Shown here: positions 9,400 through 64,000 of the stretch, piece after piece
Layout of the letters: every line of letters begins with the position of its first letter
Numbering within the stretch: the first letter of the stretch is position 1
Source of the DNA: Syncephalis fuscata S228
Taxonomy: Eukaryota; Fungi; Zoopagomycota
Assembly (NCBI GenBank): GCA_025786725.1
Contig: JAHLTZ010000045.1
Coordinates: 87,724 to 151,723 of the forward strand
DNA: 64,000 bases
Direction of reading: 5' to 3'
Program-made: the position numbers and the translations under genes
Notes under the pieces: generated by a model
Told to the model about the DNA's origin: nothing
The model's input: the letters and a program-made list of their open reading frames with translations, nothing else
Databases searched by the model: none

Positions 9400-9605
9400 T
9401 TGTACTTTGACTCCCACATTATGAGTCCCCAAAGCAAAACTCGTTTCAATGGAAGTCAGCGCTGTTATGCATAACAAACATAGTTACAATGTTTTCATTT
9501 AACTACTTGCAATTCACGAGGCCTGTTGTTGTTGTTGTTGGCCATGTGTAGAAAGATTGATTGAATGTTAATAAAAACCATATGATTGCGATTCCACGTC
9601 GTTTC
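9400..9605 (-). mobile_element. Right end of Fanzor-bearing TIR element: decayed Fanzor C-terminus (9495-9605) plus ~95-nt 3' end and TIR
   Basis: Minus strand reads TTWNRNHMVFINIQSIFLHMANNNNNRPRELQVVK* (RuvC-III WNRD motif with D>N). It ends in AATGTGGGAGTCAAAGTACAA, the reverse complement of the family TIR. Confidence 0.75.
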
Positions 9606-10669
9606 CTATTACTTCTGTCGCTTGTTTGTCATACTGCACATCAACTATTACGTGATCTGCTCCTTTTCTATCTTATCTCAGTTCAATTGCGCCACACTTG
9701 CTTATTGTAATCACAATATTTAATCCTAATAATTTCCGGTTCTTTTATACTTGCAGATCATTTTTGACAAAGCTATTTAACAATCCAGTATAAAAAGCCT
9801 TTTATTTTGTTTAACGTTGTTACAATTAAATTAATATTGTAACATGCATAATACTACATTTACTAATAAACAGTAGTGAGTATGTAACAAATAGCCATTC
9901 GTTACGGAGAATAAACGTATAAAATATTTATGCATTTTCCCACGATACTTTAAGCTTTGTCCGGGATTAATTCAAAGTTTATTTTAGTAAAAATGCAATT
10001 CTTTCTTTTTACTTCACGTATAATTTACACTATCACAAATTGCATCTGGTGCTATTGGACTTTGAAGTTCATAGCTCTAAAATGGGTGCAAATGACAAAG
10101 AAAAGTAATTAAATAAAAGAAAGATCAAGGTTAATATAATTATTATAAAAGTCGTTTATTAAATAGCCACTTTCCTATAGCCAATCTGACTAAATAAATG
10201 GCATTTAAACAATTAATAGCATAATGACAATATATATATATATATTAAAGCAATAATAAATATAACTAATTAAACAATTAATAGAATAATGAACTGACAA
10301 ATAAACAAACAATTATTAACTAAGTAGTTAAATAAAATGATTTAATGAATTGGTGGAGAAATAGTGGAAAAAGGTAGAAGCACAAAGCAAAATAGCTTTA
10401 TTTATTTAATATGTGTCAGGCATATTCGATTCATATACAGCACATTGGATACCACACAGCTGCATTACATGAATTATTAAACAGTATTTGGTATAAATAG
10501 ATAGCATATGGTTATTAGCGGTAATAGAAAAAACAAAATGAATATAATGGTTAAGACATTGGTAGAGGGAAAACTTGTATAGACTAAAGCAGATGCACGC
10601 GGTGGGTTTATTACTATTGCAACTGCTGAGATTTTGACACTATAAAAAGACTAGATCAAGCTAGCAATT

Positions 10670-11116
10670 GTTTACAAAGATGAATGGTAGTCTAAAGTGC
10701 TGCTGTACTGTTTCGTTGCACTCAATCCTATGTGTAGAGGCACTACAAATGAGCAGGCATAATGGCTGATCCGGTTGCAACCCCAACGGCCGTGGAGCGC
10801 TGCCACGTGTAGCCTTGGAAAATCGGTGATCGATGAGCCGCACTAAACACTTGTTGATGATAGTGCGCCTCGATTTCTGGTGATGGATACGCGTTCTTTA
10901 ATGGAACAATAGCCATACGCGAGGCAAAGAAAGCTGGATGGAACCGAGCTGGGTCGGCTTCTGTGGTATAAAGAATAATACTCGTCATTAGCTATAACCA
11001 ACTAACGCGAGACTGCGCAATGACTATACGTCATCAGCAGCTGTCCAGGTAGACAGGCACTTGCCTTGACGCAATATAGGCGAAAGTAATTCCGAAGCAT
11101 TGCTAAATAACGACAT
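10670..11116 (-). other. Possible small orphan gene or pseudogene (GC-richer island with broken ORF)
   Basis: Coding-like composition inside an AT-rich intergenic region: MSLFSNASELLSPILRQGKC..., then YTTEADPARFHPAFFASRMAIVPLKNAYPSPEIEAHYHQQ. It is interrupted by stops or frameshifts, and no family is recognised. Confidence 0.25.
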
Positions 11117-11477
11117 ACTGAGAATGGGAAATGGTAAAACGATTAGAGTAGAATGAAAGAAAAGAAAAAGGCTACGGTGATGTAATTGCTACATATTTCC
11201 GAGCATCATTGTAATGAAAACCACGCGGTTATGCACAACGATTATAATGGTTTTTAATAAAATTATTATAAATCAATTGCTTTTTACGTAAAAATTCAAC
11301 CCATTGTTAGCAATACGTTTGGTAATATGTATTATCCGGTTATTTTCAATTCTTTACAACAAAAAATAACACTAAACGATTCCTAATATTTTTTAAAACA
11401 CAAAGAAGCACTTATATTAACTACATGATTTACATTTAAAATAGAGAATTGCTACTGTTGATTAATTAGAAAGCTAT

Positions 11478-12232
11478 TATACTTTGAGTCTCTAGCTTCA
11501 AACTGGGAACAAAAAGCTTCATAACTCAAATAAACCGTCAATCAACTTTTAATACTGAAAAGTGTTATTTGTTGAAGCAGTGTCACATCAACTCCGATTG
11601 AATTAGTTGAAGTTGAGCCAGTCCACACTATTTCAATACTCTATATCAGTGTTAATAAATGTTATAACATTTCGTGTTGCTTACAATAAAACATAATAAA
11701 TAGATAAATTATATTAATATGCTAATCCATATTATTGTTACTTTAAAGTATTCAAAGCATTATAATTGATACTTAATGTCATTCACCATCCAGTTCCATG
11801 TTCAATAGATTAAATGTTATTAAAAATAGGTATTTGATCACCAAATCATATTAAATATTAATAAATTCAACTCAATCGTATAATAATGCAGTTTATTTAA
11901 CTCAATTAACAAGTATTAAAATTAAAAGCTAAAAATGAAATGGTACACAGCATACATGTATATATATTGGTGCAACAATACTAACACATCAAATAGAACA
12001 ATTAACTAAATAATTATTGATATCATTGCTAAAGAGTGTAAGTTGTATTGAGATGTTTAAAATAACAGTTACTGATAAAATGTTATTTTACATTTTGTTT
12101 TATGGAAATGATAATGGACAACAATATTACGTTAATGTTTATTGTGAACGATGATTTAAACACAACCCAATTTAATTAAATCATTAGATTAATTGCGTAA
12201 AAAGATTTGCTGCTCTGAAGGATCAAAGTAGA
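11478..12232 (+). mobile_element. Non-autonomous MITE-like member of the Fanzor-associated TIR family (no Fanzor coding remnant seen)
   Basis: Left end TACTTTGAGTCTC...AATAAACCGTCAATCA is homologous to 18887 and 62853. Right end ...AAAAGATTTGCTGCTCTGAAGGATCAAAGTA is homologous to 20100-20277 and 21325-21510. Confidence 0.7.
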
Positions 12233-12432
12233 TGTTCACTTTTAATTAGTATCGTACAACACATAATAATGTGCAATTTACTAACATTTAGTATGATCTA
12301 GTGATCAAATGACTACATTTAATACTATTCATACATTTAAATTGCGCATTTATTCTATTGAACATGGAACTGGATGATAAATGGCATTAGTTATCAAAAT
12401 ATAATACCTCAAATACTCTACAGTAGCAATAT
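11730..12432. repeat. Inverted repeat pair (~11730-11852 / ~12290-12432) of a foldback-type repeat family, interdigitated with the MITE
   Basis: CATCCAGTTCCATGTTCAATAGA vs TCTATTGAACATGGAACTGGATG. The same submotif recurs at 58.7-59.4 kb. Confidence 0.6.
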
Positions 12433-13278
12433 TACTAAAAAAAGAGCAAATTGATATGCATCTATTACGGCATAGACCTTTATTAAAAAATTGCAATGTC
12501 ACATTGATAAGCAGATTATTACACTGTGTATAAAATAGTACAACGTTATAAATGATGCATTACATTTGTCGACAAGAAAATTAATATTTTTGAATTCAAT
12601 CGTCATTGCAATAAATTATTATGCCACTAGATTTATTTACACTTCGATCTCTTATACATGTTGTATTTTCCTATTGTATTGGACACTTAATTGTAAGCTA
12701 GAACGCAACAAGTACCCCTCTTCTTACATTATGCTTATAATTTTTGTTATTATAAATGAAATACTTTCGCCATATGGTATGATTTTTATAAGCAGTGTAG
12801 TGTCTACATATTTACACTGTATCGATCATAAATCAACATATGATCTAAAAACTTGCCAATCCTTGTCCCTATCAATGCCACAACACGCCCAGCTGTTAAA
12901 TGTTATGGAATCTTACGGTATTTAATTTAAATATAACATAGTTCAATTGAAGCGTCTAACACTGTTATTTATTATAGGTACACGCACCAAAAACTGTTAA
13001 AGATCCAATACAAGCTACAGCAGGGCGGACAGTGAAATTGGAACTTGGTATTGGCATTCAAATTATATCTTCCATGTCAGTCTGGAGCGTATATTGAATC
13101 ATTATTGGTTCAGTGTTTGTCACAGGTTATTGCTGATAAGCTATAGCTGGTGCTTGTGACTCCAAAGGCAGGCGCTTGACGTTGGCGTTCACATAAACCA
13201 AAACGATTCGTTGCTTCGCTTTTCTTTTTGCTATTATTTCACGCCTTGTCTACAAGATTTATATGTCACAACAACAAC

Positions 13279-14051
13279 ATGCTTGCCTATTACTATAACG
13301 CGGACACCAATGAAGACCAACGTGGTGAGCACCAATATGTGCCTTCACGTCCCGTCACCATTGAACAGCTTAAAAGCGTCGGTGTGCTTTATTGGCGACT
13401 AGATTCCAGGGACCATATGGAAAAACTGGAAACCATTACTAAAGAACGTGCCTATAGCAATCGCGACGAGGTATGCTTAAATACATCTTATAAATACCAA
13501 ATACATTAACATTATTATTATTATTATTATTATTATTGATTTCTTTAAGATTGTCATCTCCCCAGATCGTTTGCCAGATTACGAGGAAAAGATTAAAATG
13601 TTCTTTAAAGAGCAAGTATTATTTATTGATAAACACATAAAATGTTAATCAAGCTATTTCCATTTAGACATTTGCATGAAGATGAAGAAATTCGTTTATT
13701 CTAGATGGATCAGGTTATTTCGATGTTCGTGATAAAGACGATGAATGGATTCGTATCTATATGGAACGCGGCGACCTTATTGTGCTACCAGCCGGTATCT
13801 ATCATCGTTTTACCCTTGATAATACCAACTTTATTCATGCTATGCGCTTGTTTAAAGATGTATGTATTCTAATGCTATAATTTATTGGAATACAACTAAC
13901 ACGTGTGTTATTAATTAATAGGAACCAAAATGGACAGCAATTAATCGGTAACTAATATCGTCTGTGCTAATATGATACTAATAGATTTAACAGACCTGTA
14001 GCTGACGAAAACACTTTTCGTGTAGAGTATTTGCGCACAATTCACACATAG
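13279..14051 (+). CDS. ADI1: Acireductone dioxygenase (methionine salvage), multi-exon
   Basis: [36 protein letters not shown] and AMRLFKDEPKWT motifs across exons. Confidence 0.95.
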
Positions 14052-14109
14052 TCGTAATAAATTGTTATTTGTCCTATTTCTTTTGCTTTTACTCTATTTG
14101 CTTTTCACA

Positions 14110-15099: not shown

Positions 15100-15212
15100 T
15101 GCTAATAACGCTTTTATTTCAACTAATAAAAAACATTTACCATTTACTTTTTACTTTTTATTTTTTATTTCACGTCGTATCATTTTAAACTAAATACATT
15201 CTACTTAACACA

Positions 15213-18686: not shown

Positions 18687-18886
18687 TTAATATGGTTATC
18701 ATTATCCTAACTGCCACTAATACTAATGGTATTAACAACAGTAACATTAGTCAAGGTAAATGTGGATCATGCCAGTTGTCCACTCATCACTCATCATTAT
18801 CATCCGTAGAGCGAATAAAGTGCTTTCAAATTATTTCATATAAATTGGATTTATAAATAATCTATTAGTATTCTGGAGATACTTCC

Positions 18887-20280
18887 CTTTGAGTCCCTAT
18901 CCTTAAAACGGGACAAAAAATTCATAGCTTGAACAATAAACCGTCAATCAGTTTTTACTACTGAGAAGTGGTTTGTTGTAGTGCTACATCAACTCCAATT
19001 AAATTAATTAGAAAATTAATCAACACAATTTCCAATATCCGATATCAGTGTTAATAAATGTTAAATAGTATTTCATGTTACTTACAATAGAATATTACAT
19101 TTAATTATGATGTTGATGCAACAGTGTCAGTTTGATTTCTTATACTAATAGATGGTAAGAAATCAGAAGGCCTTGGTTCACCACTGGCCATTGTACTGAA
19201 TATACTGTGCATGTTTCTGCTGGCATTAACATCGCACTATTTATTCATTCATATAAACTATTGGTCTATTGCTTCATCGTCTAGAATATGACTATGTTTC
19301 ATTATTTTAATAACGACGCTTTCTATGGCTACACTTGTCTTTAAGAAACATTGGCTTTGATTGTATTTCCTACTACACTCAGTAATTTATTGGTAGTATG
19401 TTTTATAGCAACAACTTTAGTATTAAATGGCTTTAATGTTTCTATTGTACTTTGACTCCCGCATTTTATTTATCCATTTCGTCATCTTTTCCTATCGCTA
19501 TCTTGTTGTTCTATTCAGTAATATATTATGTGATAATGTTGAATATAACAATATAAATAGCATGCGTATTTGAGCATCAATAAAAATGTTATTCAATTTC
19601 TGGTTTTTATTTCTCTTATTTCACATTAACATTTGTTCAAGTAGCATCAACGGCATGCCGTATATTCTGGTTACAACTGCCGCCACAAGATATTCATGGT
19701 GAAGACACTCAATCTATCATTATTGCATATGGTGGAGGTAATTTGCTTGATCAATGGTCGACAAATAAACTGCGCCTACCAAGTTGATATCAAAAATGCT
19801 CAAGAAAATGGTGAACATCAGAAATGCTAATTATTCTACCTTTTGTCACCATAGGCGAGTATCTTACAGCGTAAATGTGCCCAAAATGCAACATTAGAAG
19901 ATTGTAAAATAGAACAGACCATTTAGATGCAAGAAACCACACTGTGCATAGTAACAACAATAACAGCTGCGGAACGATATGGAATTGCAATCAATGGCTT
20001 TTATTAATATTTGATCAACCTTTCTACACATGGCCAACAACAACAATGATCAACCTCAAACATTTCAATGGAATCAAATAGTATGTTACATTATTTATTT
20101 AAATGTTTAAAATAGCAGCTAGTGATACAATGCTCCGTTACATTTTATTTTATGAAAATGGTAATGTAATGTACTAACATTAGTGTTTATTGTAGATGGT
20201 CATTTAAACGTAATTCAACTATTCAAATCATTACAATTGATTGAGTAAAAAGATTTGCTGCTTTGGGGATTAGAGTAGAT
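18887..20280 (+). mobile_element. Composite non-autonomous TIR element with decayed Fanzor C-terminus; second left-type TIR at 19446
   Basis: Left end CTTTGAGTCCC, internal TTGTACTTTGACTCCC, right end TTTGCTGCTTTGGGGATTAGAGTAG. It is near-identical to 62851-64000. Confidence 0.8.
19670..20207 (+). pseudogene. Fanzor (eukaryotic TnpB) pseudogene fragment, lineage 1
   Basis: Frameshift-corrected reading: IIIAYGGG...APTKLISKMLKKMVNIR...FVTIGEYLTA*MCPKCNIRRL*...CGTIWNCNQMA.INI.STFLHMANNNNDQPQTF. This is RuvC-II (DE>GE), a zinc-finger CxxC and RuvC-III (WNRD>WNCN). Confidence 0.8.
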
Positions 20281-20781
20281 AGTCAATCAATAATAAATTT
20301 AAATTTAAATATCAAGTGAAAACGAAAAGTGTAATAAAATGAGTTCAAATGACAAATAATAATTTAAATATAAATAAATTTAATCGACTTGTCAATTGTT
20401 CAAGTCTTTATAGTTAATCTCGTAAAATAAGCAATTTATTTGGCATTTTTGACAAACTTAATGTTCAGTTAATAAATAAATAAATAAAGGTTACTTTGTT
20501 GTAATTTGTTACGTTTATGCAATAAAAATAGTAATTACATTAATTTAAGAATTGGTCAGGGTAGTCAGGGATTGAAAAAAGCTTAAATATTTTATTGATA
20601 ATATTAGATGTCTTCTTATGTAGTGTTTTCTATGTAATGCCATATCAACACTTGGAACATTTAGTAGGTGAATTCTGCATTTTTATAATACAAAGAGCTG
20701 TATAATCATAATGATTATATTTTATGACACACTTTTTAAAAGCTGTGAAGTATGAATAATTATTTATATATAATTAAATAG

Positions 20782-21292
20782 TGATCCACCAAGAGAGAAA
20801 GAAGGATGGTGTCCAGCAAGATTACAAACAGCTGACAAAATGCCACTTATTGTATTCAGCGATGCAGTGTTTGACAAGCAGAGCAATGTATACAAGGGCC
20901 ATCGATCTGCTGTTGTCAACAGGTGCTGGCAAATGTTGAAACGACGAGAGCATCGTGGAGACCTTGTTGCCATTAAGATTGATGAGAATCTTTCTCTCAG
21001 GTAAGTATTTAATATAATCACTATTTTATTTAACAATTTAACAATTTAATAGATTTGTCATGTCTGTAAGGAAAAAAGTCTGATAGAAAAGATTGCTGTA
21101 AATGGTCATACCCATCACACCACCTTAGTCTGCCAAAACTGCCAGGTGGTGTGGAATCGGTATGTCATGGCAAGCAAAAATGTTTTCCATATCGCCGAAT
21201 CAATCTGGGATGGAAATGGCAGACCAGCTGAGTTTGCCAGACCATCTCAGGCCAGTACAATCATTGCAGAGAACGCGGGTTCGTCTCAATGA
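20782..21292 (+). pseudogene. Fanzor pseudogene fragment, lineage 2, with spliceosomal intron 21001-21052
   Basis: KMPLIVFSDAVFDK..YKGHRSAVVNRCWQMLKRREHRGDLVAIKIDENLS | ICHVCKEK...LVCQNCQVVWNRYVMASKNVFHIAESIWDGNGRPAEFAR. RuvC-II DE, two CxxC pairs, RuvC-III D>Y. Confidence 0.88.
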
Positions 21293-21311
21293 GACTTTTC
21301 AGATTTTAAAC

Positions 21312-21515
21312 GTAAGTTTTATTCAAATGTTTAAAATAGCAACTACTAATACAATGTTCTGTTACGTTTAATTATATTTTATGGAAATGATACTGTTATT
21401 ACACTACATTAATGTTTATTATAAATAATGATTTGAACACAAATTAATCGAATCAAATTACTACGATCGATTGCGTAAAATGATTTGCTACCCCAGGGGG
21501 ATTAACATACAATTC
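21312..21515 (+). mobile_element. Conserved right-end block of the Fanzor TIR family
   Basis: AAATGTTTAAAATAGCA...TTTTATGGAAATGATA...TTGCGTAAAATGATTTGCT...GGGGATT...TACAATTC aligns with 12050-12230 and 20100-20277. Confidence 0.7.
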
Positions 21516-21787
21516 AGTCAATATTTTATCGGCATTAATGGCATGAAATCTAACCGAATTCAGACCGGATGTTTATTAATTTTATTTCACAATATTAATA
21601 ACACCTTCTTTCCTTTACTTTTTCTCCTTCTTGGCTATTCTTTCTTTCTTTCTCTTCTCATCTACCACTTTTGTTTTCAGATTTAACATCTACAATCAAC
21701 TAGCATCTACAGAGTGCCGTTTTTATTGCTTTTGGTCGATAGAACGCACACCCACAAATATAAACATACAAAAAGTATAATTATATC

Positions 21788-22533
21788 ATGCTTATCCAAT
21801 ATTGTCGTCCACGTCGACCTTTATTATGGCTATTTGTCATTACAGTAACTATTCTACTTATTGTGACCATTGTGTCACTTAGTAGCCGTTCAAATAGTTC
21901 TATTGACCATTTCTCCAACTATCAGCAAGACCCGGCTGTTTCATCCGGCTGGTTTAGTGGTATCGATCTAGCTACAGGGAATGATTTCTGGTCACCAGCC
22001 ATGACATCTGCTAATATAGGTGGTGGTGTTATTATGAGCGAGTTGGGTAATGCAACCATACGGTAAGTCAATAGAGTTGCATACTAAAGAGTTAATTAGT
22101 ATAATCTAATACATGATTTATATTATTAATGTTATCAATATTACTATAGAGCTGAATTGGGACAATCAGCTGGCGTGTACTGCACACTATGGCATCTCGA
22201 TTCCCCAAGCAGCCCACTGAAGATGAAAAGGGAGCACTACGCTCTTTTATCTATTTATTCGCTCGTCTTTATCCGTGTGGTCAATGTGCTAAGCATTTTC
22301 AACTCGTACTTAAGGAGCACCCGCCTGTAGTTGAGTCGCGATCAGAAGTGGCACAATGGGCCTGTAAAGTACATAATGTCGTCAATAAGCGACTTGATAA
22401 ACCAGTATTTGACTGCAGCACCGTTGAAACCCATTGGAAGTGTGGCTGTGCCGACGCAGATGGCGAAGACGGCAATGATAATGAGACATCAACTGAGAAG
22501 AAGACAGTATCTGCAGTAGCAGCATTACTATAG
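21788..22533 (+). CDS. ERV2: FAD-linked sulfhydryl oxidase of the ER (Erv2 type), 2 exons
   Basis: N-terminal signal anchor; LGNATIR|AELG..WRVLHT, YPCGQCAKHF, CKVHNVVNKRL, C-terminal WKCGC. Confidence 0.92.
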
Positions 22534-35283: not shown

Positions 35284-37475
35284 ATGTTCAGGAGCGTTGC
35301 CCGCCTTTCCTCCCGGCAGTTGGCCCGTCCTTCGCGGTCGGTCATTGCTCAACTTGTACGTAGCCATGATCCAAACAATAGTTGCACTTTTGAATAAACG
35401 TGTTGTGTCGGGATGTTGATGAGGATGGCGTCATAGCATTGCTGACTTTGATCTATGGCATATGCCGTTGAATCAAAGTCAACGACCCTATAATGGCATC
35501 GTCATCAGTGTTGTAGACCGCACGGATATGTTAAAAGGCGCATATACGGTGTTTGGATCATATTAATCCAGCGTTTTCAAATCCAGATGCTAATATAAAA
35601 ATGCTTTATATATGCTGTATTTAATGGTGTATTTAGGCCTCGCGCAATGTTGCTGCTGCTTCTCAAATGGGTCGCGCTTTGTCCACAAGCGCTATGAGCC
35701 AGGCTGCTGCTAAGCCAGGTAAGCGATCGGCTGAAATGCGCTAGAATAAATAGCGCTATGGCCATGTAGTCTATACATAAATAAATAAATAGCATTGACT
35801 GACTTTTAATACTGCTAGGTACCTCTGAGGTCAGCTCCATCATCGAGGAGCGCATTCTTGGCGTCAAGAGCGACGTCGATATCCAGGAAACTGGTCGTGT
35901 CTTGTCTGTTGGTGACGGTATTGCCCGTGTCTACGGTTTGAAGAACTGCCAGGCCGAAGAAATGGTGGAATTCTCCAGCGGTGTTCAGGTAGGCTAACTA
36001 GCATTTAGGCAGCCATTCATACCATATGTGCATCAAAAATGATGGATAATGTTATAGATTGGGTCTAATTGCATTGTTGTTGTATAATGTGTAATTAATC
36101 AATATAATAATTTAATATTATACAGGGTATGGCTCTTAACTTGGAACCAGACAATGTCGGTATTGTCGTGTTCGGTAACGATCGTTTGATCAAGGAAGGT
36201 GACACTGTTCGTCGTACCGGTAACATTGTCGATGTACCAACTGGCGATGCTTTGCTCGGCCGTGTCGTCGATGCTCTTGGTAACCCAATTGACGGTAAAG
36301 GTCCAATTAAGGCCAGCTCCCGTCAACGTGTCCAAGTCAAGGCTCCAGGTATTATCCCACGTCAATCTGTACACGAGCCTATGCAGACCGGTCTCAAGTC
36401 TGTCGACTCTATGTTGCCAATTGGTCGTGGCCAACGTGAGTTGATTATTGGCGATCGTCAAACTGGTAAGACTGCCGTCGCTCTTGATACTATTATCAAC
36501 CAGAAGAAATGGAACGATGGTGCTGACGAGTCCAAGAAGCTCTACTGTGTCTACGTTGCCATTGGTCAAAAGCGATCCACTGTCGCCCAGTTCGTAAAGA
36601 CCCTAGAGGAATACGATGCGCTTAAATACACCATCATTGTAGCTGCTACCGCCTCCGATGCTGCTCCATTGCAGTTCTTGTCGCCATACTCTGGCTGTGC
36701 TATGGGTGAACACTTCCGTGACAACGGCAAACACGCCCTTATCATCTACGACGATTTGTCCAAGCAGGCCGTCGCCTACCGTCAAATGTCGTTGTTGCTT
36801 CGTCGTCCACCTGGTCGTGAAGCCTATCCTGGTGATGTGTTCTACCTTCACTCGCGTCTTTTAGAACGTGCTGCCAAGATGAACAAGGACTTTGGTAGCG
36901 GTTCATTGACTGCCTTGCCAGTTATTGAGACTCAAGGTGGAGATGTGTCTGCATACATTCCTACCAATGTCATTTCCATTACTGATGGCCAGATTTTCTT
37001 GGAAGCCGAGTTGTTCTTCAAGGGTATTCGTCCAGCCATTAACGTCGGTATTTCCGTATCTCGTGTCGGTTCTGCTGCCCAGACCAAGGCTATGAAGCAA
37101 GTTGCCGGTTCGCTTAAGCTTTTCCTTGCCCAGTATCGTGAAGTGGCCGCCTTTGCCCAGTTCGGTTCCGATCTTGATGCATCCACCCAGTTCTTGCTTA
37201 ACCGTGGTGCCCGTCTTACCGAGTTGTTGAAGCAGCCTCAGTACAGCCCATTGCCAGTCGAACTCCAAGTTGCCATCATCTACGCCGGTGTCAACGGTTT
37301 CCTCGACAAGATTGAGGTCAAACGCGTTGTTGACTTCGAAGGCGCTTTCTTGCCATTCATGACCTCCCAGCACGCCGATATTCTTTCGTCTATTCGCACG
37401 GAAGGCAAGCTTACCGAGGCCACTGAACAGAAGTTGCGTTCGGTTATTACCGAATTCAGCAAGACGTTTGTCTAA
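35284..37475 (+). CDS. ATP1: Mitochondrial F1 ATP synthase alpha subunit, 4 exons
   Basis: Presequence [15 protein letters not shown]; [61 protein letters not shown]. Confidence 0.99.
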
Positions 37476-51183: not shown

Positions 51184-53565
51184 GGGAAATTTTGGAAAAT
51201 ACACCGTTTAGCAGTTTTAATTACAGAAATACTCTTTTTTAAATTCTAAAAAAATTTCCTTTTTTTTTGTTTTATAAAATAAATACACTGCTTTTCACTT
51301 TTATTTAGAAAAATACATTGTTTTAAACTTTATTGTAATAAATTATTTTTTAAGTTTATTAAATAAATTTAATAAATAAAAATAAATCGTTCTTTGCTTT
51401 TATCTATCGAGATACGCCGTTTTGAAAAGCCTATCGCAATGTCTACCAAACTATTTAAAAAAGCTATATTTAACAGTATTGCAAAACTGAGGATTGCTGT
51501 TGACGGGTTTAAGCTTGTTAACGGTTGCAATTTAAGAGGAAAAATAGCGATTCAACAAGATTACAGCTTATTTATCCTCATGAAGACCATTTTAGCAACA
51601 AATGTCAGTTTGTTTTGACTGCCAGAAAGCAGAAAACTGGCTTAGTAAAGATTGCTCAATGCAATCTTGAGCATTTTAATGACTGTCCATATAACACGGG
51701 TAATGGTACTATTAAGTCTATTGCTAAATATATTACAAGTGGTGTCGCTATATTCTTAAATGTAAAATTAACAGATGTACAAATAAAAGTATCAAAGTAT
51801 GTACATATTTGATTATTTAATATACACTAACAGCTGTAATAGTTCAACAAAAGTTGATATTTCTTATTACAAAGCTTGGTCCGCCCTTAATTCGATGAAA
51901 AAGAATGATATTGCTGTTAATATCATTCTTTTTCATTTATTAAAGATTACCTTATCAAATTTGAACATTTTAATCCGGGTTCTGTTCAGCACTTCTCGCA
52001 GAACCAGTCCGGTAACTTTGAAAGGGCATTTTTATGTCCTTCATCATATATTAAAGCTTACCACTATACTCGTAAAGTACTGGTAATTGATGGCTGCCAT
52101 CTAAGATCTTCTTATGGCGGTGTTGCTCTTACTGCAGTTGTTAAAGATGGAAATAACAATATTTTCCCTTTGGCTGTTGCCATAGTGTCTCATGAAAATG
52201 AAAACAATTGGGTTTATTTTCTTAAACATCTATCAGATTCAATACCTGAATTAAGAGAAAAAATCAAGTCATTATTAGCGACAGAGATAAAGGAATAGAG
52301 TCTTCGATAAGGACTGTATTTCCCTTGGCACACCACTCTGCATGTGTTGCTCATATTGAAAGAAACATCAATGCTGAATTTAAAACAAAGCTTAATGGTT
52401 TAATATGGAAAGCTGCAAAAGCTTTAACTAGTAAAGAATTTGATGGTATTTATATTTATTTAAATTACATTCAAAGTACTAATTTATTTTTTAGATTCAA
52501 TGAAAGTGATACGGTCATTAAATGAGCCAGCTTATAACAAGCTAATAGACTCAGCAAAAAACTGGGCTAGATCATCTTTTAAATGGCCAAGATTTGGTTG
52601 CGTTACTTCAAATTCATCAGAGTCATTGAACTCATGGATGAACGACCTTCGGAACAAATCCCATTATCAATTTTTTACTGAATTTGTCGCCAAAGTTGGA
52701 ACTTTGTTGAATAAGCGTATAATTAAGTATTCACAAGCTCAAGGATTGTTAACTAATAATAGCTATTTGTTGTATAAATCACCATTAACTGACGCCAATA
52801 ATTATATAATTGACGATTATTCTGATACCAAATTTCAAGTTAAAGATACCAAGTCTGGTATTGTCAGAACAGTAGATTTAACTGAAAAACCTGCACATGT
52901 GGATACTGGGAAGAGATGAAGTTTGTTTGTAGTCATGTGGCAATAATTTTGAAGAATTTAAGCTCTTATTAGATGATTTTATTGATAAATCTTACACCGT
53001 TAATTATCTAAAAAAGTATATGCTCTAGAAATTTGTCCGGTTGAAATGGAATCAATTACCGCAGACATTTCGTGTTTGCCACTGACAATAACGAAGAAAG
53101 CCAGTAGACCAAAAGTTAAAAGAATTAGATCTTGTGGTGAAGCTTTGGAAGCCTCTCAGCAATATGCTTGTCGCAATTGTAGCTCAAAGGACACAATACA
53201 AGAACATGCACTGTAAACACTAGCATTAGTAACGTTGAAACAAACATCTTTATTGAGGAACAAATACAAACTACTAGTGAAACGGCTATCAAAAAAAGAA
53301 AGCGTGTTATTAAAGAATGTTTAATTTGTGGTGAACGCCATTACAAGAAAACGAAGTGTGGGGTAAATAAAAAATAATTTTATTTATTAAATTTATTTAA
53401 TAAACTTAAAAAAATAATTTATTATGGTAAAGTTTTTTTGTAATTAAAAGTGAAAAGCGGTGTATTTATTTTATAAAACAAGAAAAAAAAGGAATTTTTT
53501 TTAGAATTTAAAAAAAGTATTTTTGTAATTAAAACTGAGAAACGGTGTATTTTCCAAAATTGCCC
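51184..53565 (+). mobile_element. Mutator-like (MULE/MuDR) DNA transposon with ~200-bp TIRs
   Basis: GGGAAATTTTGGAAAATACACCG... at 51184 and ...CGGTGTATTTTCCAAAATTGCCC at 53565; AT-rich arms extend ~200 bp. Confidence 0.92.
51439..53377 (+). pseudogene. MULE transposase (DDE, SWIM, zinc knuckle), frameshifted, with introns
   Basis: VLVIDGCHL..YGGVALTAVVKDGNNNIFPLAVAIV..ENENNW.YFL, ISDRDKGI, HSACVAHI, TSNSSESLN, CTCGYW....VCSH, CRNC...HN.RTC. Confidence 0.9.
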
Positions 53566-53712
53566 TAAATATTAATAAAATATAATAACATTGTCATTTT
53601 AATACTTGTTAATTAAGTTAAATAAAACATATCATCATATAAAATATTGTGTGCTATTTAAAATTATTATACAATTTAATTGAATTTATTAGCCATTTAG
53701 TATGATTTGTGG

Positions 53713-56700
53713 TTAAATGAACAGTGTCAATGTCGCTGTATTAGATGTAATTGCAATATGTTTATTTTTTATTTAATTAATAACTAAATAAAATATATGG
53801 TAACATATTGTTATTATTCTGCTTGGAGTAAGTAATAAGCAATACCACTAACATTGCACTAATTTTGAATGACCTATAATAAAGCTTGTTAGTATTTGAT
53901 AATGCTTACGTTATGTTTGGTTGAAATGGAGTTTGGGTTCATATCTTTTATTTCCAAAAAAATATGAAGCTTAAAGTAAAATCGTCCCGAAATGTGATTT
54001 AAGAGCATTTTGTGTATTTTTTGTTATTAGTATTATTGTTAAACTTGTAACGTTATGCAATTGTTTTAATTGCTTGAATCAATAACTTGTGAGTGTGTTA
54101 GGGGAGTCGTGGCGGCGTAAACAGCCAACACGCCTTTCCTTAGGAGGAAAATGTTGGTTTGCCTATTTTGAATTGCGTTTTCAGGAAATGCGTGATGGAA
54201 TCCTTTTGTAAGAGAAACGGTCGATATTCCAACACGTGAGAAAAGCCACCGACAGTTTCTGTTGCAGATGGCAAGTTCTGCGTTGCACGCGGATAGGTTT
54301 CAAAATGAGCCGTCTATTCTTCTATGGGTGGCAGGCAAATGCTGCAAATGCGCGGTTAGTTCTTACGGACCGTTGCCTCACTCAAGCTAGTAAAAATCAG
54401 ATCAAAGTCAAGGGATTACAAAAATGAGGCAAATAGATCATTAGCTCAAATGACAACTAAAAATAGCTACAATATATCTATGAAACGACAATGCATATTT
54501 GTGTTTCATAATTACACCAATCATACTTGGTAAGGTACAAATTTTAAATAGCCAAACGTAAATAGCATATGTAGAATAATCTACTATACAAACCACTAAC
54601 ATAAAGATATAATTACTTACTGATTGCACTGCATTTTATAAATCAGCTAATTATATATTTAAAGCGCATTGATTATTATAAATGTAATAAATTGATATTT
54701 AAAATCATTTGTATTTATTCTGTTATTTATGTAAAACAACGTAATTATTGCCAGTTTTAAAAAGCAAAGCCAAACTTAATGGTTTGGAATGTAATTGCTT
54801 TTACATCAACACAGCCACTAATTATTGAATTAAGCAATTAAAGAAATTATATAGTGCTACAAGTTAAAAATAGTTTATGACAAAATCATACACAGGATAA
54901 CCCTACATTACATTTTTATAATTGCATAATATAAAATGGTACGTGTATTCTCAGTGTTTCAAACGATAACCAACTAGTCCTTTGCATGGGATCATAAACA
55001 GGTAATTGTTACAGAAATACCAGCTACATTTGAGAACTTTTACATATTACAAACCGATTGCTTACCCAGTATCTTATTTAAATAAAGCAATGATTTTTAA
55101 TTTGTAAAGCAACAACTCACTACCAACTATTATTAGGATTACTGATTAATTTATATTTTCGTATCTCTAATACTCCTTTAAAACTTACAATGCATTTATC
55201 ACTTCATAAGCTACTTTTTGTGCTGGCACTAGCAATCAAATTGGATTTGCCTACTACAAGTAGTTTTAGAACTCAAATATATGTTTATTGTAATTACTAA
55301 TATGTACCGAATACTGGATAATTTTGGTAAAAACAACGGCTTAATTCCCGCAGAAGCTAACCCGCTTGATCTTGGCAATTCGGCTCAACCCGTCGTAGCA
55401 AAAACTCCTGACACCGGTAACAAGGCTTCACCCGTCCCGAAGTCGGTAATCCCACCCGAACCCGCCAAGTCAAGCCAAACTGCATCGGCAAAAAACACAC
55501 CTTCAAAGTCAGGTCAGGCCGATTGGAAATATCCTATTGTACGTCGTGACCAGTCTGTTGTCGAGACCATTCATGGCCATAAGATTGCCGATCCATACCG
55601 ATGGCTGGAAGATACTAAAAGCAATGAAACTAAGGTTAGATTTAGTCTAATCAGCTTTTAATAAAGCTAACAAATAACTAGGCATTTGTCAAGGACCAGA
55701 ACAAACTGACAGACTCTTATTTAAGCCGAAATAGCCAGCGCGATGCTTATACAAGCGCGTAGGTAGCATTAAATGTATTAACAAAATAGCTACTAATTAT
55801 TTGTTGCAGCGTTAGAGTTACTGAACTATCTAGCAGGGACTGGATGAGCGCTCCAGTGAAAGCTGGCAATTATTACTTTACTTTTTATCAATCTAATTCA
55901 GATAATCTGAGTATTTTGTATAAGCAGAAGTCATTGAATGCTGAAAAGACGGTTTTCCTTGATCCAAACCAATGGGACAAAAATAATCCTGTCACCCTCA
56001 ATCGAGATCTATTTTCTAATTCTGGAAAATATTTTGGTTATATTATTAGGAAAAGCGGCAACGACTGGGGCACCATACGCGTACGTTGTGTTGAAGACAG
56101 CCCACATTGCAAGGCTGGCCAGGATGCAACTGATGAAGTCAAGTGGCTTAAGCTCTTTGATATTGCCTGGTCCCACGATGAACTCGGCTTCTTTTACACA
56201 GTAAGTTATAGCTATTATTCACATTGTTTATATTTATTTATTTATTTACAATTGATTAGCGTTATCCAGAACCAAGTGGCGGCGACAAAGCTGCTAACAC
56301 CAAAACAAGCAGCAGAGAGAATGCTAAAGTTTACTACCATCGTCTTGGTACGCAACAGTCGAGCGATCAACTAATCGTTGAATATCCTGAAGCTCCTACA
56401 TATAATACATTTGCTTTGACAAGCGATGATGGCCGCTGGCTAGTAATAAGAGTTACTGATAATAAACGTAACGAAGATGTATGGATGGCTCGTATGGGTA
56501 AAGATGGAAGTGTACCAAAAAATATTACATTCAACAAGATAGCAAATGATATGAATGGCTATCATAATTAGTAGGTGACAATATACATATAGTTAATTTA
56601 GCTAAATCAATTTTATAGCATTACCAATGTTGGGGATCGCTTTTATTTCTATTCCGACAAGAATGCTCCTCGTTCTAAAGTTATTACATATGACATGGCA

Positions 56701-58584
56701 GCTCCAAAAAGGGATTCATCGATTTGATTCCTCAGCATGAAAAAGACATTTTAAATGATGCATATCCTGTAGGAGGCGATTATCTCTTGCTTAACTATAT
56801 GAAAGATGCAAAAAATGTTTTATCGATCCATCAGCTTAGCACTGGCAAAAAAATCCGTGATATACCATTGCCTATGGGCTCAGTGAAAGATATTTACACA
56901 CTTTAGACATACCGAAGTATTCTTTTCAGTGCAATCTTTTTTGAGTCGAGGTACCATTTACCGTTATGATGCTAAATCAAATACACTATCTGTGGTAAAT
57001 GAATTGAAAACGCCTGGATTCAATCCCGAGGAATTTGAAACACGCCAGGTATTCGTTAAAAGCAAGGACAACGTAGAGTTTCCTATGTTTATTACAGCAC
57101 GCAAAGGAATTTCACTCGACAAAAGTCACCCAACCATCTTATTTAGTGACGGCAGTTCCTCTCAATCACAAAAACCACAATTCAATACGCTATGGGGTGT
57201 TTTCCTCAAACATTTCAATGGTATTGTGGCTGTCGCTAACATACGCGGTGGCGGCGAATATGGCTCCGAGTGGCGTAAAGATGGTATGTTACAAAAGAAG
57301 CAAAACACTTTTGACGACTTCCAAAGTGCTGCCAAATATCTTTCTGAGCAAGGCTACACCAAACCGTCATTGCTAACACTTCAAGGTGACGGACTGGCGG
57401 CTTACTAGTTACCACTGCTGCTAATCAGGCGCCCGAATTGTTGGATGCGGTCTAGCCAATTATGGTCTTACGGATATGCTACGATTTTATAAGTTTCCTT
57501 TTGGAAGTGCCTGGACAACGAGATTGGCAATCCTGATGTTAAAAGTGATTTTGAATATTTATTACGGTATTCTCCATTACACAATGTCAATGCCAACAAA
57601 ACTTATCCAGCACTGCTTTTAAACACACCAGATCAATTGGACTTTATAGCAACATTGCATTCATACAAGTTAGCTGCTGAGCTTCAATATAAACTACCAA
57701 AGAATCCCAATCCATTGATGCTTCGTATTATTGAAAACTATGAAGCTAATGGACTATCAATAGCGGGTTCGATTGCTCAATCTGTGGATAAGCTTTCATT
57801 TCCATTAGCGGTTCAGGTTGCTCAAACTGTGGATAAGCTTTCATTTATGGCAATATCTCTTAATCTAAAGTGGCATAATTAGGTAATAATTAAATGGTTA
57901 TTAAAATTAATAAACACCGTTTAAATATAGCTGCTTATTATTTGATTAATAAGATGAAACTATTACAACGCAGATACAAGTGTATCATATTAAATTATAC
58001 TAAAATTGTATTGTTTTTTAAATGTTATAGCATCCATTGTTACTATTTCGAATATTTAATTATTTGGTGTTAAAGCTTAGTTATATCGATTACCAATTGG
58101 CAATCCGAATTAATTACTACTACTATTATCATATGATTTGCATCACATTATCAATACGCATGATTAGCTTGCAAATAAACATCCGGTCCTGCTGATTTCA
58201 AGTAACAATTTCAATTGATATTCTTACCAACAACTTAGGCCTTCTGTAAAATAATTGTTAATTGTTATCAACTATGTAACTTATTGCAAAGATATTATTT
58301 ACCTTAATAAATAGAATAATACTCATACTAATTGCTAAAAGAAAGAACAAATTATAAGTCTAAATTCTTTTTAAAATCCATTTATTATAAAATATAATTA
58401 CTATCTACTATTTTTATTATAGGTCATTCAAAATTAGTGCAATGTTAGTGGTATTGCTTATTACTTACTCCAAGCAGAATAATAACAATATGTTACCATA
58501 TATCTTATTTAGTTTATTAATTAAATAAAAGATAAACATATTGCAATTAATCTAATACAGCGACATTGACACTGTTCATTTTAA
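53713..58584. repeat. ~170-bp inverted repeats (53713-53884 / 58412-58584) enclosing the peptidase-like gene
   Basis: ATGAACAGTGTCAATGTCGCTGTATTAGA...GAATGACCTATAATAA is matched in reverse complement with few mismatches. Confidence 0.85.
55190..57882 (+). CDS. Secreted prolyl oligopeptidase (S9A) homologue, probably catalytically inactive; multi-exon with frameshifts
   Basis: Hydrophobic N-terminus MHLSLHKLLFVLALAI; YPIVRRD...HGHKIADPYRWLED, VFLDPN, SKDNVEFPMFI, ANIRGGGEYGSEW, KQNTFDDFQSAAKYL, YSPLHNV, HSYKLAAELQ. Confidence 0.88.
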
Positions 58585-58669
58585 CAATACTATCAAAATG
58601 TTTATTAAATATTTACTGTGATTTAAGGATCAAATGATTAAACTTATACTATTTACGCAGTTGAACTAC

Positions 58670-59455
58670 ACATTTAATTTATTGAAGATGGAGACGAGTG
58701 GTAAATTTCATTAATCATCAAATCATCACATTTATTGTGATCGGTGGTCAAATGACTAAATCTAACAATATCCAATCTATTGAACATGATGATGAGTGGT
58801 GAATGGCATTAAATATCAAATACTTATCATTGTGGATTTATTATCCAGTACGCATATATCCACCGTTTACCTATACCGTTAACAATGTATGTCTAGAATG
58901 TTATATATTGTTTTATGCTATACTGAAAATTGACATATTGTTATAAGTTTCAATTACATATAGCTTGTTAAATGAATGAGTTGAGATTTATTAACAATAA
59001 AGCTAGAACGAACATAAAAACAGATTTGGATAGAGGGAGTCTAGACAATTATAGAATAATATATAGAATAATAAATATACGATAAGAAAGTATATAAAAT
59101 AATGTTAAAGCTATAGTGCATATAGTATAATGAGAGGAATGAGTGGAGTGCATTGGAACATATAAACAATAGAATGTGTCCAGTATAACATAAAATCATA
59201 TATAATAATGTAAAATAGAGTGGGAATGATATAGGTAAATGGTGGATATATGCATACTGGATAATAAATCTACGATGATGAGTATTTGATGATTGATGTC
59301 ATTCACCACCCACCATCATGTTCAATAGAAAAAATATTTAGCTCAATTACGCAAATGTTATTAAATTTAGTCATTTGACTACCAAGTCATACTATAATGT
59401 GATAATTTAATCATTAATATTTTTCACCACTTGTTCCATGTTCAATAAAATAAAT
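58670..59455. mobile_element. Foldback/MITE-like element with ~200-bp imperfect inverted arms
   Basis: GATTTATTATCCAGTACGCATATATCCACCGTTTACCTATA (58835-58875) vs TATAGGTAAATGGTGGATATATGCATACTGGATAATAAATC (59230-59270). The arms extend outward through GGTCAAATGACTAAAT / ATTTAGTCATTTGAC. Confidence 0.7.
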
Positions 59456-59795
59456 ATTAGTTCAATGTAATCACTCCGACCCCCAATCATACTAAATGCT
59501 AATAAAATAATAATAATACTTGTTATAATTAACTTAAAGAATAAGTTTATAATTACTTTAATTACTTTGTTGTAGAGAATAGATATTGGTTGAATTGTAT
59601 TCAAATCATTAACAGCATTCAATAGCTGAGCAGTGTAGACTTTAATATTACTCATGTAATCATTAGCATGACAATAAACGATACACATTATTATTTTTTA
59701 CATTACAGCTTTACATATAATAAATAGAACTTTTATTTAAACTAACACTACTCAATTGTGCAAACTTCACTAACAACATAATATTATTAAATTTG

Positions 59796-61197
59796 CTAAC
59801 AGCATCCATAAGTACGATGTGATTTACCACTTAAACGTACTAGACAATAATAAATTAATTAATATAATCTTCATTGCATCAATTAGCTATTTACCTGTGG
59901 ATGTATTATCCATTTTTTTGTTTTGATTGGCCACTTGAGCCCAGTCTTCAGCTATTGCTATTTCAATAATTAGAACTTTTAATTGTATAAAAAATTACAA
60001 TTATATTTGACTTACCTTGAAACATAGCAGCAACGCCAGCACCTGTTCGATTCGAAATCTCAAATCGATTTGTCGCTTCTATTTCACTAGCTATTTGTTC
60101 AACCATTTGTGCGGTGATTGAACGCGGCAATAGCTTTTTGTTGTATTTAGATTGTTGTATAGTAGAATATTGTGCTATAGTAGTGCTGTTATAATAATCG
60201 TTCTTTTCTTCTTCTTCTTCACTGTCATATATAGTATCAATAAATTTAACAGGAGATGTTTTAGTACTGATCCAGGCTGGTTGAGATGGACATGAACACG
60301 TACGACGTCGTTGCGAAGACTTTATCGGAGATAGCGAAGAAGCAAACGTACCTACGGCTATAGTGCGATAGGATGAAGTGTTGTTATAGCTGGACGGTGT
60401 CGAAGTTAGTACAGTCGTGTTGGTAGTATGGGTTGTTGCCACGGCCAATGTACCACTACTGTTGTTCTGGTGTAGACCAAAAACCGGTAAGTCAATAGCA
60501 AGTGAAACTGCCGACTCTGTTGCCAAGTTGATACCCGAATCACCCCTTGATTTAGCGTAAGATTGATCGACTACACATTCAGTAGATGTATTTAACTGTT
60601 CAAGGGGCAAGTTATTCAAACTTATAGTAGAAGTGTTATCAGTGCCATTACATGACGCATAGTATTCATTATCTTTTTGGCCATATAACTCAGCAGGTGT
60701 TAAAAACGAAAATGGCCTTGTGCCTTGCCGCTGTCTTTTGCCCAGCGTTGATTCAACAGCTGTGATGAGAGGGGCCACTAAATCGGCCTTAACACCACAA
60801 AGAAAAAGCCGACAACTGGGCTCACATTGTCGTAATTCGTTGGCCCATCGGCGACAGCGATCCAACGACTCGGGATCTGTAAGACTGTAGCATAGAATGG
60901 CCGCTGACGCCGCACGATAATACATTTTTGTCATACCCGCATATCTTTCTGAGCCTGCTGTATCCCAAATACCCATAAGGTGGTGCTTTCGATTGCCTGC
61001 TACAAGTACATGCTTACGGCCAAATGCTGCACCAACCGTCTATAACGATAAGGTCAGTTATTGTAATCAAGCAAATGCCCACTTACCGCATGACATCCTG
61101 CTTCAGTAAAACGATCGTAAACGTATCGTTCAAGCAGCGAGGATTTACCCACACCTGCGGCCCCCAATAATACAACTTTTAAATCCACTCGATTCAT
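59796..61197 (-). CDS. RAB24: Rab24-like small GTPase with large internal insertion, multi-exon
   Basis: MNRVDLKVVLLGAAGVGKSSL.ERYVYDRF, TVGAAF, GIWDTAGSERY (Rab24-specific Ser), MYYR, LCGVKADL, C-terminal GCC*. Confidence 0.82.
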
Positions 61198-61584
61198 AGA
61201 AAACGCAGTATAGTTTTTTAATGTTAATAACGGTGAATACTCAAGATGAGTACTAGTATTGGTAGTTGCAGTCAAGTGAATATTTATTCAGGAGAAATAG
61301 AATAGTTACCAAAGATAACTCGTAATGATAACTCAGACGTATAGGCTAGGCGTTGCTGTTGTTAATGTTACTATTATTATTGCACTGCTGTTGATATGAC
61401 TGCTAATATGACTATTATTATATTAATAGTTATAATTAATATTATGAATACTATTGCTAAAATGTTGCTAGTAGTAAAAAGGGGAAGAAAAGGAATAAAC
61501 GGCTGGTTTAGTTAATGAAACGATATAGATAACCAAAAACTGGCTTTATTAAATTGTCCGACAATCATATGACCCATTCCATGC

Positions 61585-62710
61585 TTAGTTTGATGGTAGT
61601 TCTCCGCAATCTTGAATCTCTACAACTTTCTATTGGGTTTAACACATAGTTGATTTAGCTATTGACAAAAATGGTTTGATGTTCAGGTGGTTTTCTTACC
61701 GTTGTGGTACCATCCAAACTGCCAGCCTTTTCCATTTCCTTTAAGACCTCCAAACCTTCAGATACTTGACCAAACACTAGACCGATGTAATAGTTAGTAG
61801 ATATATACTTTTATCCATTTACTCCATCCTACCAACGTGGTGGCCATCCAGCCATGGCGTGGACTTGAACGTGATAAAGAATTGGCTGCCGTTTGTATTC
61901 TATAATGATAGACTTGGTTAATAATCCAACAGTACATTAATTAACATACCTTGCCCGCATTGGCCATACTCAGAATGCCCTATGAACAAATGATCGTCAA
62001 CATACTACAATCTACGAATCAGTGCATCAATAGTAATCTACCTTATCGGTATGCTTGAGGTTAAAGTTCTCACTAAGTCATTATAGTAAGTAAAATGCTA
62101 ATTATTGTAAATCAACTTACTCAGCAAATTTAGCACCATAAATCGACTCGCCACCACGGCCATCGCCCATGGTGAAATCTAATGGTGTAAAATGTGTTTT
62201 AATTACAAGTAATGGATTTATTAACAATTATTTACCTCCACCTATTTAGATAAAAGCCATTATATACACAATATCGTTAAAATGGGTATATAATAATTAA
62301 TCCGTTATTTAAATCTTTAATCTACCTTGAGCCATAAATTGAGGAATAATACGATGGCTAATTAAATAGTATTAATAGTGTTGCTTTTTGTAATTCATTA
62401 GACGGATCTATTACTTACAATCTGTTGCCCTTGAAATGAAGTGGCTTGCCTGAGACGCCCTTTCCTTTCTCTCCCGTGCTATATTGTTCAAGACAGCGTA
62501 TAAGCAATAGAATAAACGTTTATTTTATTTAATATATACCAGAGGGCTCGGAAGTTTTCTGCGGTCTTTGGTACCGTCTCGTTAAATAGTTTGAATACCA
62601 GACGGCCAGCTATTTGTAATTAGTTACTAAGCCAGTTGCAGTTTAGCATATCTACCTGGTTTGCCAGCAATGGCAATATCAAAAAATACTTTGTTGGCAC
62701 GAGAACTCAT
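61585..62710 (-). CDS. Cyclophilin-type peptidyl-prolyl isomerase, highly fragmented into exons
   Basis: VFFDIAI, VPKTAENFRAL, TGEKG, HRIIPQFMAQGGDFT, GGESIYG, ENFNLKH, LSMANAG, NTNGSQFFIT, WLDGHHV, VFGQV, IQDCGEL. Confidence 0.95.
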
Positions 62711-62850
62711 GTTGTAGCCGTTGTTTGGACAAGAATCAATCAAGTAGTGGCGACAATAGCAGCAATGAAATGTCGTTAAACTGAAAAAGAAAAAGAGCGC
62801 GTTTGATTTAATACATCACACCTATTTTATCGTTGATTTTACGAAGCTAT

Positions 62851-64000
62851 TGTACTTTGAGTCCCCATCCTTAAACTGAAGGACAAAAAGATCAATAACT
62901 CGAACAATAAACCGTCAATCAGTTTTTACTACTGAGAAGTGGTTTGTTGTAGTGCCACATCAACTCTGATTGAATCAATCAGTGTCAATTAATCTGCATT
63001 ATTTTCAATATCAAAACAAATATTAAATAGTATTTCATGTTACTTACAATAGAATATTACATTTAATTATGATGTTGATGCAACAGTGTCAGTTTGATTT
63101 CTTATACTAATAGATGGTAAAAAATCAGAAGGCCTTGGTTCACCACTGGCCATTGTACTGAATATACTGTGCATGTTTCTGCTGGCATTAACATCGCACT
63201 ATTTATTCATTCATATAAACCATTGGTCTATTGCTTCATCGTCTAGAATATGACTATGTTTCATTATTTTAATAACGACGCTTTCTATGGCTACACTTGT
63301 CTTTAAGAAACATTGGCTTTGATTGTATTTCCTACTACACTCAGTAATTTATTGGTAGTATGTTTTATAGCAACAACTTTAGTATTAAATGGCTTTAATG
63401 TTTCTATTGTACTTTGACTCCGCATTTTATTTATCCATTTCGTCATCTTTTCCTATCGCTATCTTGTTGTTCTATTCAGTAATATATTATGTGATAATGT
63501 TGAATATAACAATATAAATAGCATGCGTATTTGAGCATCAATAAAAAACGTTATTCAATTTCTGGTTTTTGTTTCTCTTATTTCACATTAACATTTGTTC
63601 AAGTAGCATCAACGGCATGCCGTATATTCTGGTTACAACTGCCGCCACAAGATCTTCCTGGTGAAGACACTCAACCTATCATTATTGCATATGGCGGAGG
63701 CCATTTGCTTGATCAGTGGTTGGCAAATAAACTGCGCCTACCAAGTTGATATCAAAAATGCTCAAGAAAATGGTGAACATCAGAAATGCTAATCATTCTA
63801 CCTTTTGTCACTATAGGCGAGTATCTTACAGCGTAAATCTGCCTAAAATGCAACATTAGAAGATTGTAAAATAGAACAGACCATTTAGATGCAAGAAACC
63901 ACACTGTACATAGTAACAACAATAACAGCTGCGGAACGATATGGAATTGCAATCAATGGCTTTTATTAATATTTGATCAATCTTTCTACACATGGCCAAC
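62851..64000 (+). mobile_element. Second copy of the composite Fanzor-remnant TIR element (truncated by window end); internal TIR at 63408
   Basis: TGTACTTTGAGTCCCC start; 63026-64000 is near-identical to 19063-20040. Confidence 0.85.
63630..64000 (+). pseudogene. Fanzor pseudogene fragment, lineage 1 (copy 2)
   Basis: IIIAYGGG...KLISKMLKKMVNIR...TIGEYLTA*ICLKCNIRRL*...CGTIWNCNQ, with the same lesions as the copy at 19.7 kb. Confidence 0.8.

Follow-up and report, generated by a model that had tools for sequence, protein, structure and literature searches.

The closest precedent for the elements described here is the Fanzor1 family Spu-1 of Spizellomyces punctatus with its 'ghost' loci (Saito et al. 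2023, PMC10432273). This family has 19 full-length genes with a single-exon open reading frame (ORF) and TA target duplications, and its omegaRNAs have been demonstrated. The MuDR-like elements ROr-4, PBl-3 as well as MCi-4 of Mucorales likewise carry intron-containing fungal Fanzor1 genes without a transposase, between terminal inverted repeats (TIRs) of 31-42 bp and with 9-bp target-site duplications (TSDs), in 6-9 copies that hold the full gene (Bao and Jurka 2013, PMC3627910). Here we report a family of decayed Fanzor1 elements from Syncephalis fuscata S228, found in a stretch of 64,000 nucleotides (the window; positions 87,724 to 151,723 of contig JAHLTZ010000045.1) at the end of its contig (C312) in an assembly of 29.4 Mb and 371 contigs. 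The window contains six decayed 3' fragments of Fanzor1 genes from three lineages (A, B and C) and one coding-free element with the same ends.

In common with Spu-1, the Syncephalis family has inverted repeats that are short, numerous copies in which the gene is partial or lacking, a conserved 3' region that extends over the right repeat, and no transposase found inside the repeats. It differs in that no intact gene was found, introns interrupt the genes, a single TIR family is common to three lineages, the TSDs are 8-9 bp long and many elements have two 3' ends. [quoted passage not shown] The proteins of Mucor flavus (GAA5808627.1), Apophysomyces (KAF7721224.1) and Mycotypha (KAI8971783.1), all Mucorales, belong to the same subfamily, with 37-58% identity over pieces and a C-terminal PF07282 domain. 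The carrier differs, as the M. flavus gene is in an element with 92-bp TIRs starting with CAG and flanked by TA, which is Tc1/mariner-like. Since this relative sits between mariner-like ends, the Fanzor subfamily changes carriers.

We consider it likely, with a probability of about 0.7, that the elements are a fossil: they would be non-autonomous and derived by internal deletion from a cut-and-paste DNA transposon family, most likely of MuDR/MULE type, with TIRs of about 23 bp starting with GG and TSDs of 8-9 bp, which once bore intron-containing Fanzor1 genes of at least three lineages. The family extends Fanzor1 elements to a mycoparasite of the Zoopagomycota and puts the end state of such a family on view, in which ghost-like copies number in the hundreds while no working nuclease was found. 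The presence of three protein lineages on one TIR family also offers a natural comparison of how an omegaRNA scaffold adapts to a given transposon end. The importance is limited, as the assembly yields no usable enzyme and publications of 2013 and 2023 already describe the general arrangement.

Identification of the Fanzor1 fragments

Spliced gene models were searched exon by exon, and broken frames were read with X at stop codons. Single pieces gave nothing or weak matches in Pfam and PDB; for lineage B the Pfam match was to Cas12f1-like_TNB, under the cut-off, and the sole PDB match was SpuFz1 (E values in Table 1). Because the scores of single pieces left the Fanzor identity open, a large search was done with an alignment of the RuvC-II exon. 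It gave 158 relatives, and the named ones were from Syncephalis and Mucorales. A profile built from 18 of them was used against known proteins, the window and the genome. It matched SpuFz1 with an E value of 2.7e-17 and mimivirus L79 with 1.4e-7, while TnpB and Cas12 proteins were weaker (TnpB 5e-4), so by profile E values the family is closer to Fanzor1 than to the Fanzor2 or TnpB references. In the window the profile scored 135 bits for lineage B and 14-16 bits for lineage A. An earlier note on this DNA, made from the sequence alone, had recognised Fanzor remnants here, and the profile bears this out. That note had counted four fragments of two lineages. All four are at the places it gave, and their residues at the RuvC-III Asp site were read correctly as N, N, Y and N, but the profile adds two lineage C tails, which brings the count to six fragments and three lineages.

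The C-terminal motif of Fanzor1 (RuvC-II Glu, [TS][TS]xx, C4 zinc finger, RD) is complete in lineage B apart from single-copy changes, runs from RuvC-II to RuvC-III in a longer lineage C copy (L051) and is decayed in lineage A. In agreement with eukaryotic genes carried by a DNA transposon, the fragments are accompanied by TIRs, TSDs and GT-AG introns, one of which was seen spliced. The lineage C tails in the window are 89% identical to L051. Between lineages the identity was 34-41% for B and C and about 30% for A and C, and a tree of 65 columns did not resolve the three, with a long branch for lineage A that comes partly from its frameshifted reading. Two lineage A fragments in the window (~19600-20080 and ~63560-64000) are 95% identical to each other. 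The third, a tail at ~9490-9605 on the minus strand, has 88% DNA identity to a lineage A copy over 75 nt and is unsupported by the profile.

Loss of the nuclease

The earlier note expected intact parents elsewhere and proposed a search for full-length copies. With the profile at least 84 matches were found in the genome and none of them was intact; the genome searches are lower bounds, the assembly is fragmented, and the queries did not include N-terminal parts of lineages A and C. RuvC-I was covered by a single match, the longest relative (P0002, C317:733322-734771). This locus is also broken: its frame is shifted, and unrelated DNA stands in place of its zinc-finger/RuvC-III exon. The RuvC-I Asp is absent from all fragments in the window and was seen only in this broken lineage B copy. 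The fragments are pseudogene remnants and not enzymes. What makes them dead is the loss of the gene's 5' part, with RuvC-I and everything upstream, and not the RuvC-III residue; with these parts missing no nuclease can come from the fragments, which makes the system a fossil as far as this assembly goes. Present-day Fanzor activity would be expected only if the assembly lacks an intact gene. A GC-richer repeat of about 290 bp in the window (54101-54394) is 84% identical to the DNA that replaces the exon on C317 (L041:1194-1482).

According to the earlier note the RuvC-III Asp was lost in every copy. As a rule this does not hold: the GAT codon is kept in 11 of 15 lineage B copies, in 13 of 47 lineage A copies and in both lineage C tails of the window. 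Asn occurs naturally at this site in GtFz1, and the D606N change makes SpuFz1 more active (PMC11423790), so Asn is not inactivating in Fanzor1 and may have been a founder state. The idea of a selective loss of the Asp was rejected on these data. In lineage A the change from GAT to AAT is a CpG transition, because the codon follows CGC. The rate of C>T and G>A changes at CpG as compared to other sites was 0.27 vs 0.12 in lineage A, 0.15 vs 0.10 in lineage B and 0.32 vs 0.08 in lineage C.

How the copies may have arisen can be outlined as follows. The end of the gene would have been placed just inside the right TIR in each parent, and the omegaRNA scaffold would have been made up of the final ~70-110 nt, the TIR among them, with the flanking DNA as guide, as in SpuFz1. 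Internal deletions would then have spared the termini together with the 3' coding part beside them. A transposase acting in trans could have amplified any two ends in inverted orientation, even where both were 3' ends. The copies decayed afterwards, faster at CpG, and their interiors were probably exchanged recently by ectopic gene conversion.

Element ends and the carrier transposon

The analyses of the ends were based on 81 loci picked by sequence searches. The end motif proposed in the earlier note was found in the window five times at up to two mismatches (0.04 expected), and exact copies occur 80 times in the genome and not at all in the control. It is a real, enriched part of the element end, but only the inner one: the whole TIR is about 23 bp long and starts with GG, and the motif begins about 7 nt inside the true terminus. 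The full TIR gave 250 matches in the genome compared to one in the control, and the terminal GG was present in 28-29 of 40 ends. One 5' type and three 3' types could be distinguished. The 3' types lie downstream of Fanzor tails, which point towards them. We also considered whether the first bases of the motif are the target-adjacent motif of an IS200/605-like element; this was ruled out, as the conserved sequence runs outward to GG and is inverted at both ends.

Target duplications were analysed with 42 candidate end pairs. Among lengths of 2-13 bp, flank identity was above that of shuffled pairings only at 8 and 9 bp (P ~0.003 each, uncorrected). At 8 bp, seven pairs were at least 75% identical, with 1.2 expected. 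Clean cases of 8/8 and 9/9 were found as well as cases of 8/9 and 7/9. The association of the fragments with a single short-TIR transposon family, as the earlier note had it, is thus upheld by the TIR counts, the 8- and 9-bp TSDs and the tails beside the 3' TIR types.

The carrier is probably of MuDR type. TIRs with a variable 9-bp TSD, as in the 9/9, 8/9 and 7/9 cases, are typical of MuDR/MULE elements and occur here alongside the 8-bp cases. In favour of this assignment, the genome has 15 MULE transposase matches. Three points weigh against it. None of these matches was tied to the TIRs of the Fanzor family among the listed coordinates (100 of the 250 TIR matches), although one lies about 5 kb from a C-type end (C336:21728-27425). 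A MULE relic inside the window was ruled out as partner, as it has its own TIRs of ~200 bp, which are unrelated. Furthermore, the mixture of 8- and 9-bp TSDs with a terminal GG suits the definition of Merlin at least as well.

Merlin (IS1595-related) transposons are defined by TIRs of 24-462 bp with a terminal GG and by 8- or 9-bp TSDs; many families have TIRs of 23-29 bp, and they are known from Mucoromycota and once from Zoopagomycota (PMC8101967). The Fanzor-bearing family has these defining features in its terminal GG, TIR length and TSDs. If the carrier were a Merlin family the association would be one of Fanzor with Merlin, with the rest of the explanation as above; our literature search found no such link and no Fanzor cargo of Merlin. 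However, no candidate for a Merlin transposase was detected in the genome with PF12762 or NF033547, although the gene may be extinct or very diverged. In addition, the Mucorales Fanzor elements with short TIRs and 9-bp TSDs have already been placed in MuDR, and ROr-4 starts with GG too. We therefore regard a Merlin carrier as rather unlikely and keep to MuDR as the assignment.

The 3' ends and guide RNA

In the last 62 nt of lineage A and C 3' ends, a hairpin pairs the TIR with an upstream partner. The mean folding energy was -11.9 kcal/mol in lineage A (z -1.3) and -14.8 kcal/mol in lineage C (z -1.5), whereas 5' ends had no such hairpin (mean -3.3 kcal/mol, z 0.1). Across copies 88-89% of the stem positions are paired, mainly by G-U-compatible changes. 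The omegaRNA of SpuFz1 spans 75 nt including the right inverted repeat, and 134 ghost loci keep that region without a gene (PMC10432273). By this analogy it is plausible that the A and C 3' ends are omegaRNA scaffolds, but the evidence is suggestive only. Several results speak against it: B-type 3' ends fold no better than shuffled sequences (z -0.15), covariation in the hairpins was not above shuffles, and RNAalifold gave no consensus for the A ends. For the C ends the consensus had five pairs. A scan with Rfam gave no match.

The earlier note suggested that retention of the 3' ends may preserve guide-RNA cassettes. That they were retained is explained by their position beside the TIR alone, as internal deletion keeps whatever adjoins the TIRs. 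The hairpins could then be DNA features only, in which the binding site of the transposase has a subterminal copy in inverted orientation, and the tails of Fanzor would be passengers. The lack of covariation and of an Rfam match agrees with this. On the other hand, an inverted partner is present at 3' ends of different sequence (A and C) and absent from 5' ends, in the same way as the omegaRNA overlaps the right inverted repeat in Spu-1 (PMC10432273). We see this explanation as possible but doubtful.

One sequencing run, guessed to be RNA, had many contigs of the family across the lineage A fragment. One of these skips 20081-20195 precisely at GT..AG, an intron that was predicted from the sequence beforehand, and a neighbouring host intron was skipped too. 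Such transcription of the family would be expected if the 3' ends formed a living guide repertoire, in which expression of these ends yields omegaRNAs that load an intact Fanzor absent from the assembly, as proposed for the Spu-1 ghosts, and in which cutting of empty sites drives copying between loci. The hairpins specific to 3' ends, with variation that is mainly G-U compatible on the sense strand, and the recent copying of interiors (see below) would also suit it, and an assembly in 371 contigs may miss a gene. So would two copies 40 kb apart on C46 that have exactly 14 nt of flank in common past their C-type 3' ends (L022:1485-1498 and L023:2898-2911), a guide-like length, with a 9-bp TSD only in L023; this is, however, a single example and lies in a TAC microsatellite. 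No intact gene was found, the ends are 75-88% diverged without covariation, and the contigs of the run, whose RNA nature is a guess, carry no strand, level or small-RNA information. A living repertoire is thus improbable. Still less probable is the combined view that three Fanzor1 lineages were captured by a family of Merlin type, or of some other type that is unassigned, and that this family multiplied omegaRNA cassettes with two ends, with scaffolds behind a spliceosomal intron, which until recently guided Fanzor-driven copying between loci.

In lineage A, some DNA subfamilies cleanly have a GT-AG intron of ~50 nt at the end of the frame, whereas others lack it, among them the copy at 9393 in the window (9490-9510 as compared to L066, L070, L073 and L079). 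Intron loss via an RNA intermediate is a possible cause.

Copy number and composite elements

The earlier note inferred a very large genomic family from the copies in the window, and the genome agrees. At least 84 profile matches were found, the lineage C module was present at 40 or more places, as was the lineage A 5' end, and both together at 15 or more, and a first look gave 176-714 family candidates.

In the composite at 18875-21519 both outer termini are Fanzor 3' ends, and the A module begins with its own 5' TIR at 19438. The full composite recurs on C46. In comparison to three other copies its interior is 94-100% identical, whereas the first 200 nt (the C end) are 79% identical and the right termini differ too. 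From this contrast we infer recent ectopic gene conversion into older ends and not fresh transposition. The copy at 62843 has at least 1.5 kb of upstream flank in common with a copy on C79 at 99.8% identity; the two are therefore one insertion that was duplicated, as a segmental duplicate or by assembly redundancy. Another nested inverted-repeat family, similar to miniature inverted-repeat transposable elements, is present at 58600-59500 and 11760-12430 and is often found beside or inside Fanzor elements at other loci.

Table 1. Fanzor1-related features in the window, with positions counted from its first nucleotide (PWM, position weight matrix).
Feature	Position	Strand	Evidence
3' (right) TIR of lineage A element, outer end at 9393	9393-9415	-	PWM match, 33 bits
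Putative omegaRNA-scaffold region, terminal hairpin including the TIR	9393-9482	-	Fold z -2.2; family hairpin 88% paired, no covariation
Lineage A RuvC-III tail (WNRN at 9585-9596), 3' subtype without intron	9490-9605	-	88% DNA identity to lineage A copy
Family homology past the 9490-9605 tail	on to ~9860; again 10121-10273
'Ghost' element without coding relic; both ends are Fanzor-type 3' ends that face outward (C-type 11470, B-type 12240)	11470-12240	.	9-bp TSD, 8/9 match
Composite of 2.6 kb: C tail (-), A fragment (+), spacer, B fragment (+)	18875-21519	.	8-bp TSD candidate, 6/8; also at C46:600113 (97%)
TIR, 3' end of lineage C	18875-18897	-	TIR and tail position
Lineage C terminal exon with two predicted stem-loops, putative omegaRNA scaffold	18875-18983	-	89% paired, covariation not above shuffles
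Predicted GT-AG intron past the lineage C stop	18984-19085	-	Sequence; one contig with a joint 18978-19098, imprecise and of low depth
Lineage C RuvC-III tail, Asp kept (19225-19236), overlooked in the earlier note	19105-19236	-	Profile E 2e-4
Internal 5' (left) TIR with degenerate outer bases, lineage A module	19438-19460	+	TIR match
Lineage A 3' fragment with stops and frameshifts: RuvC-II Glu at 19857-19859, zinc finger (decayed), RuvC-III at 19980-19991	19600-20080	+	Profile, translation
GT-AG intron ending the lineage A frame	20081-20195	+	Spliced in family-member contig, joint 20080-20196
Terminal exon and degenerate B-type 3' TIR with hairpin	20196-20287	+	End comparison, fold
Lineage B exon that runs to RuvC-II Glu (20984-20986), with 1 nt deleted at its end	20782-21000	+	Profile, translation
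Predicted GT-AG intron of 52 nt, lineage B	21001-21052	+	Sequence; gap between two protein matches
Lineage B exon: C4 zinc finger, RuvC-III, Asp to Tyr at 21161-21163	21053-21292	+	Pfam E 0.0014 (under cut-off), PDB SpuFz1 E 0.21
B-type 3' region and degenerate TIR, ~77% identical to 20094-20259	21318-21519	+	End comparison
Second composite of C+A, truncated where the contig ends; C-type TIR at 62843-62865, internal 5' TIR at 63400-63422, lineage A fragment at ~63560-64000	62843-64000	.	
Second lineage C RuvC-III tail, Asp kept, overlooked in the earlier note	63067-63198	-	Profile

Other features of the window

The minus strand of 1-7209 has a large multi-exon gene or gene cluster, with a hydrophobic N-terminal ORF (5515-7209) and many repeats of ~48 residues with the core GRRF(I/V)RR..F..W (ORFs 1969-4422 and 4479-5099); its ORFs had no Pfam match above the cut-off and no usable Atlas match. 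The decayed MULE transposase element mentioned above spans 51184-53566, and its TIRs are 86% identical to each other. At 53715-58581, inverted repeats of 170 bp (97.6% identical) surround a spliced gene at ~55281-57882 in a Pack-MULE-like arrangement. Judging by its translation, this gene may encode a prolyl oligopeptidase. A host gene at 21790-22533 (+), 270 nt downstream of the composite, is transcribed according to contigs of the probable RNA run, with splicing at 22062-22148. Its C-terminal ORF contains CxxC motifs and is presumably like the Erv1/Alr sulfhydryl oxidases, as judged by the translation. Ordinary host genes are those for the ATP synthase alpha subunit at 36129-37475 (+) and for a Ras-family GTPase with a long insertion at 59963-61275 (-).

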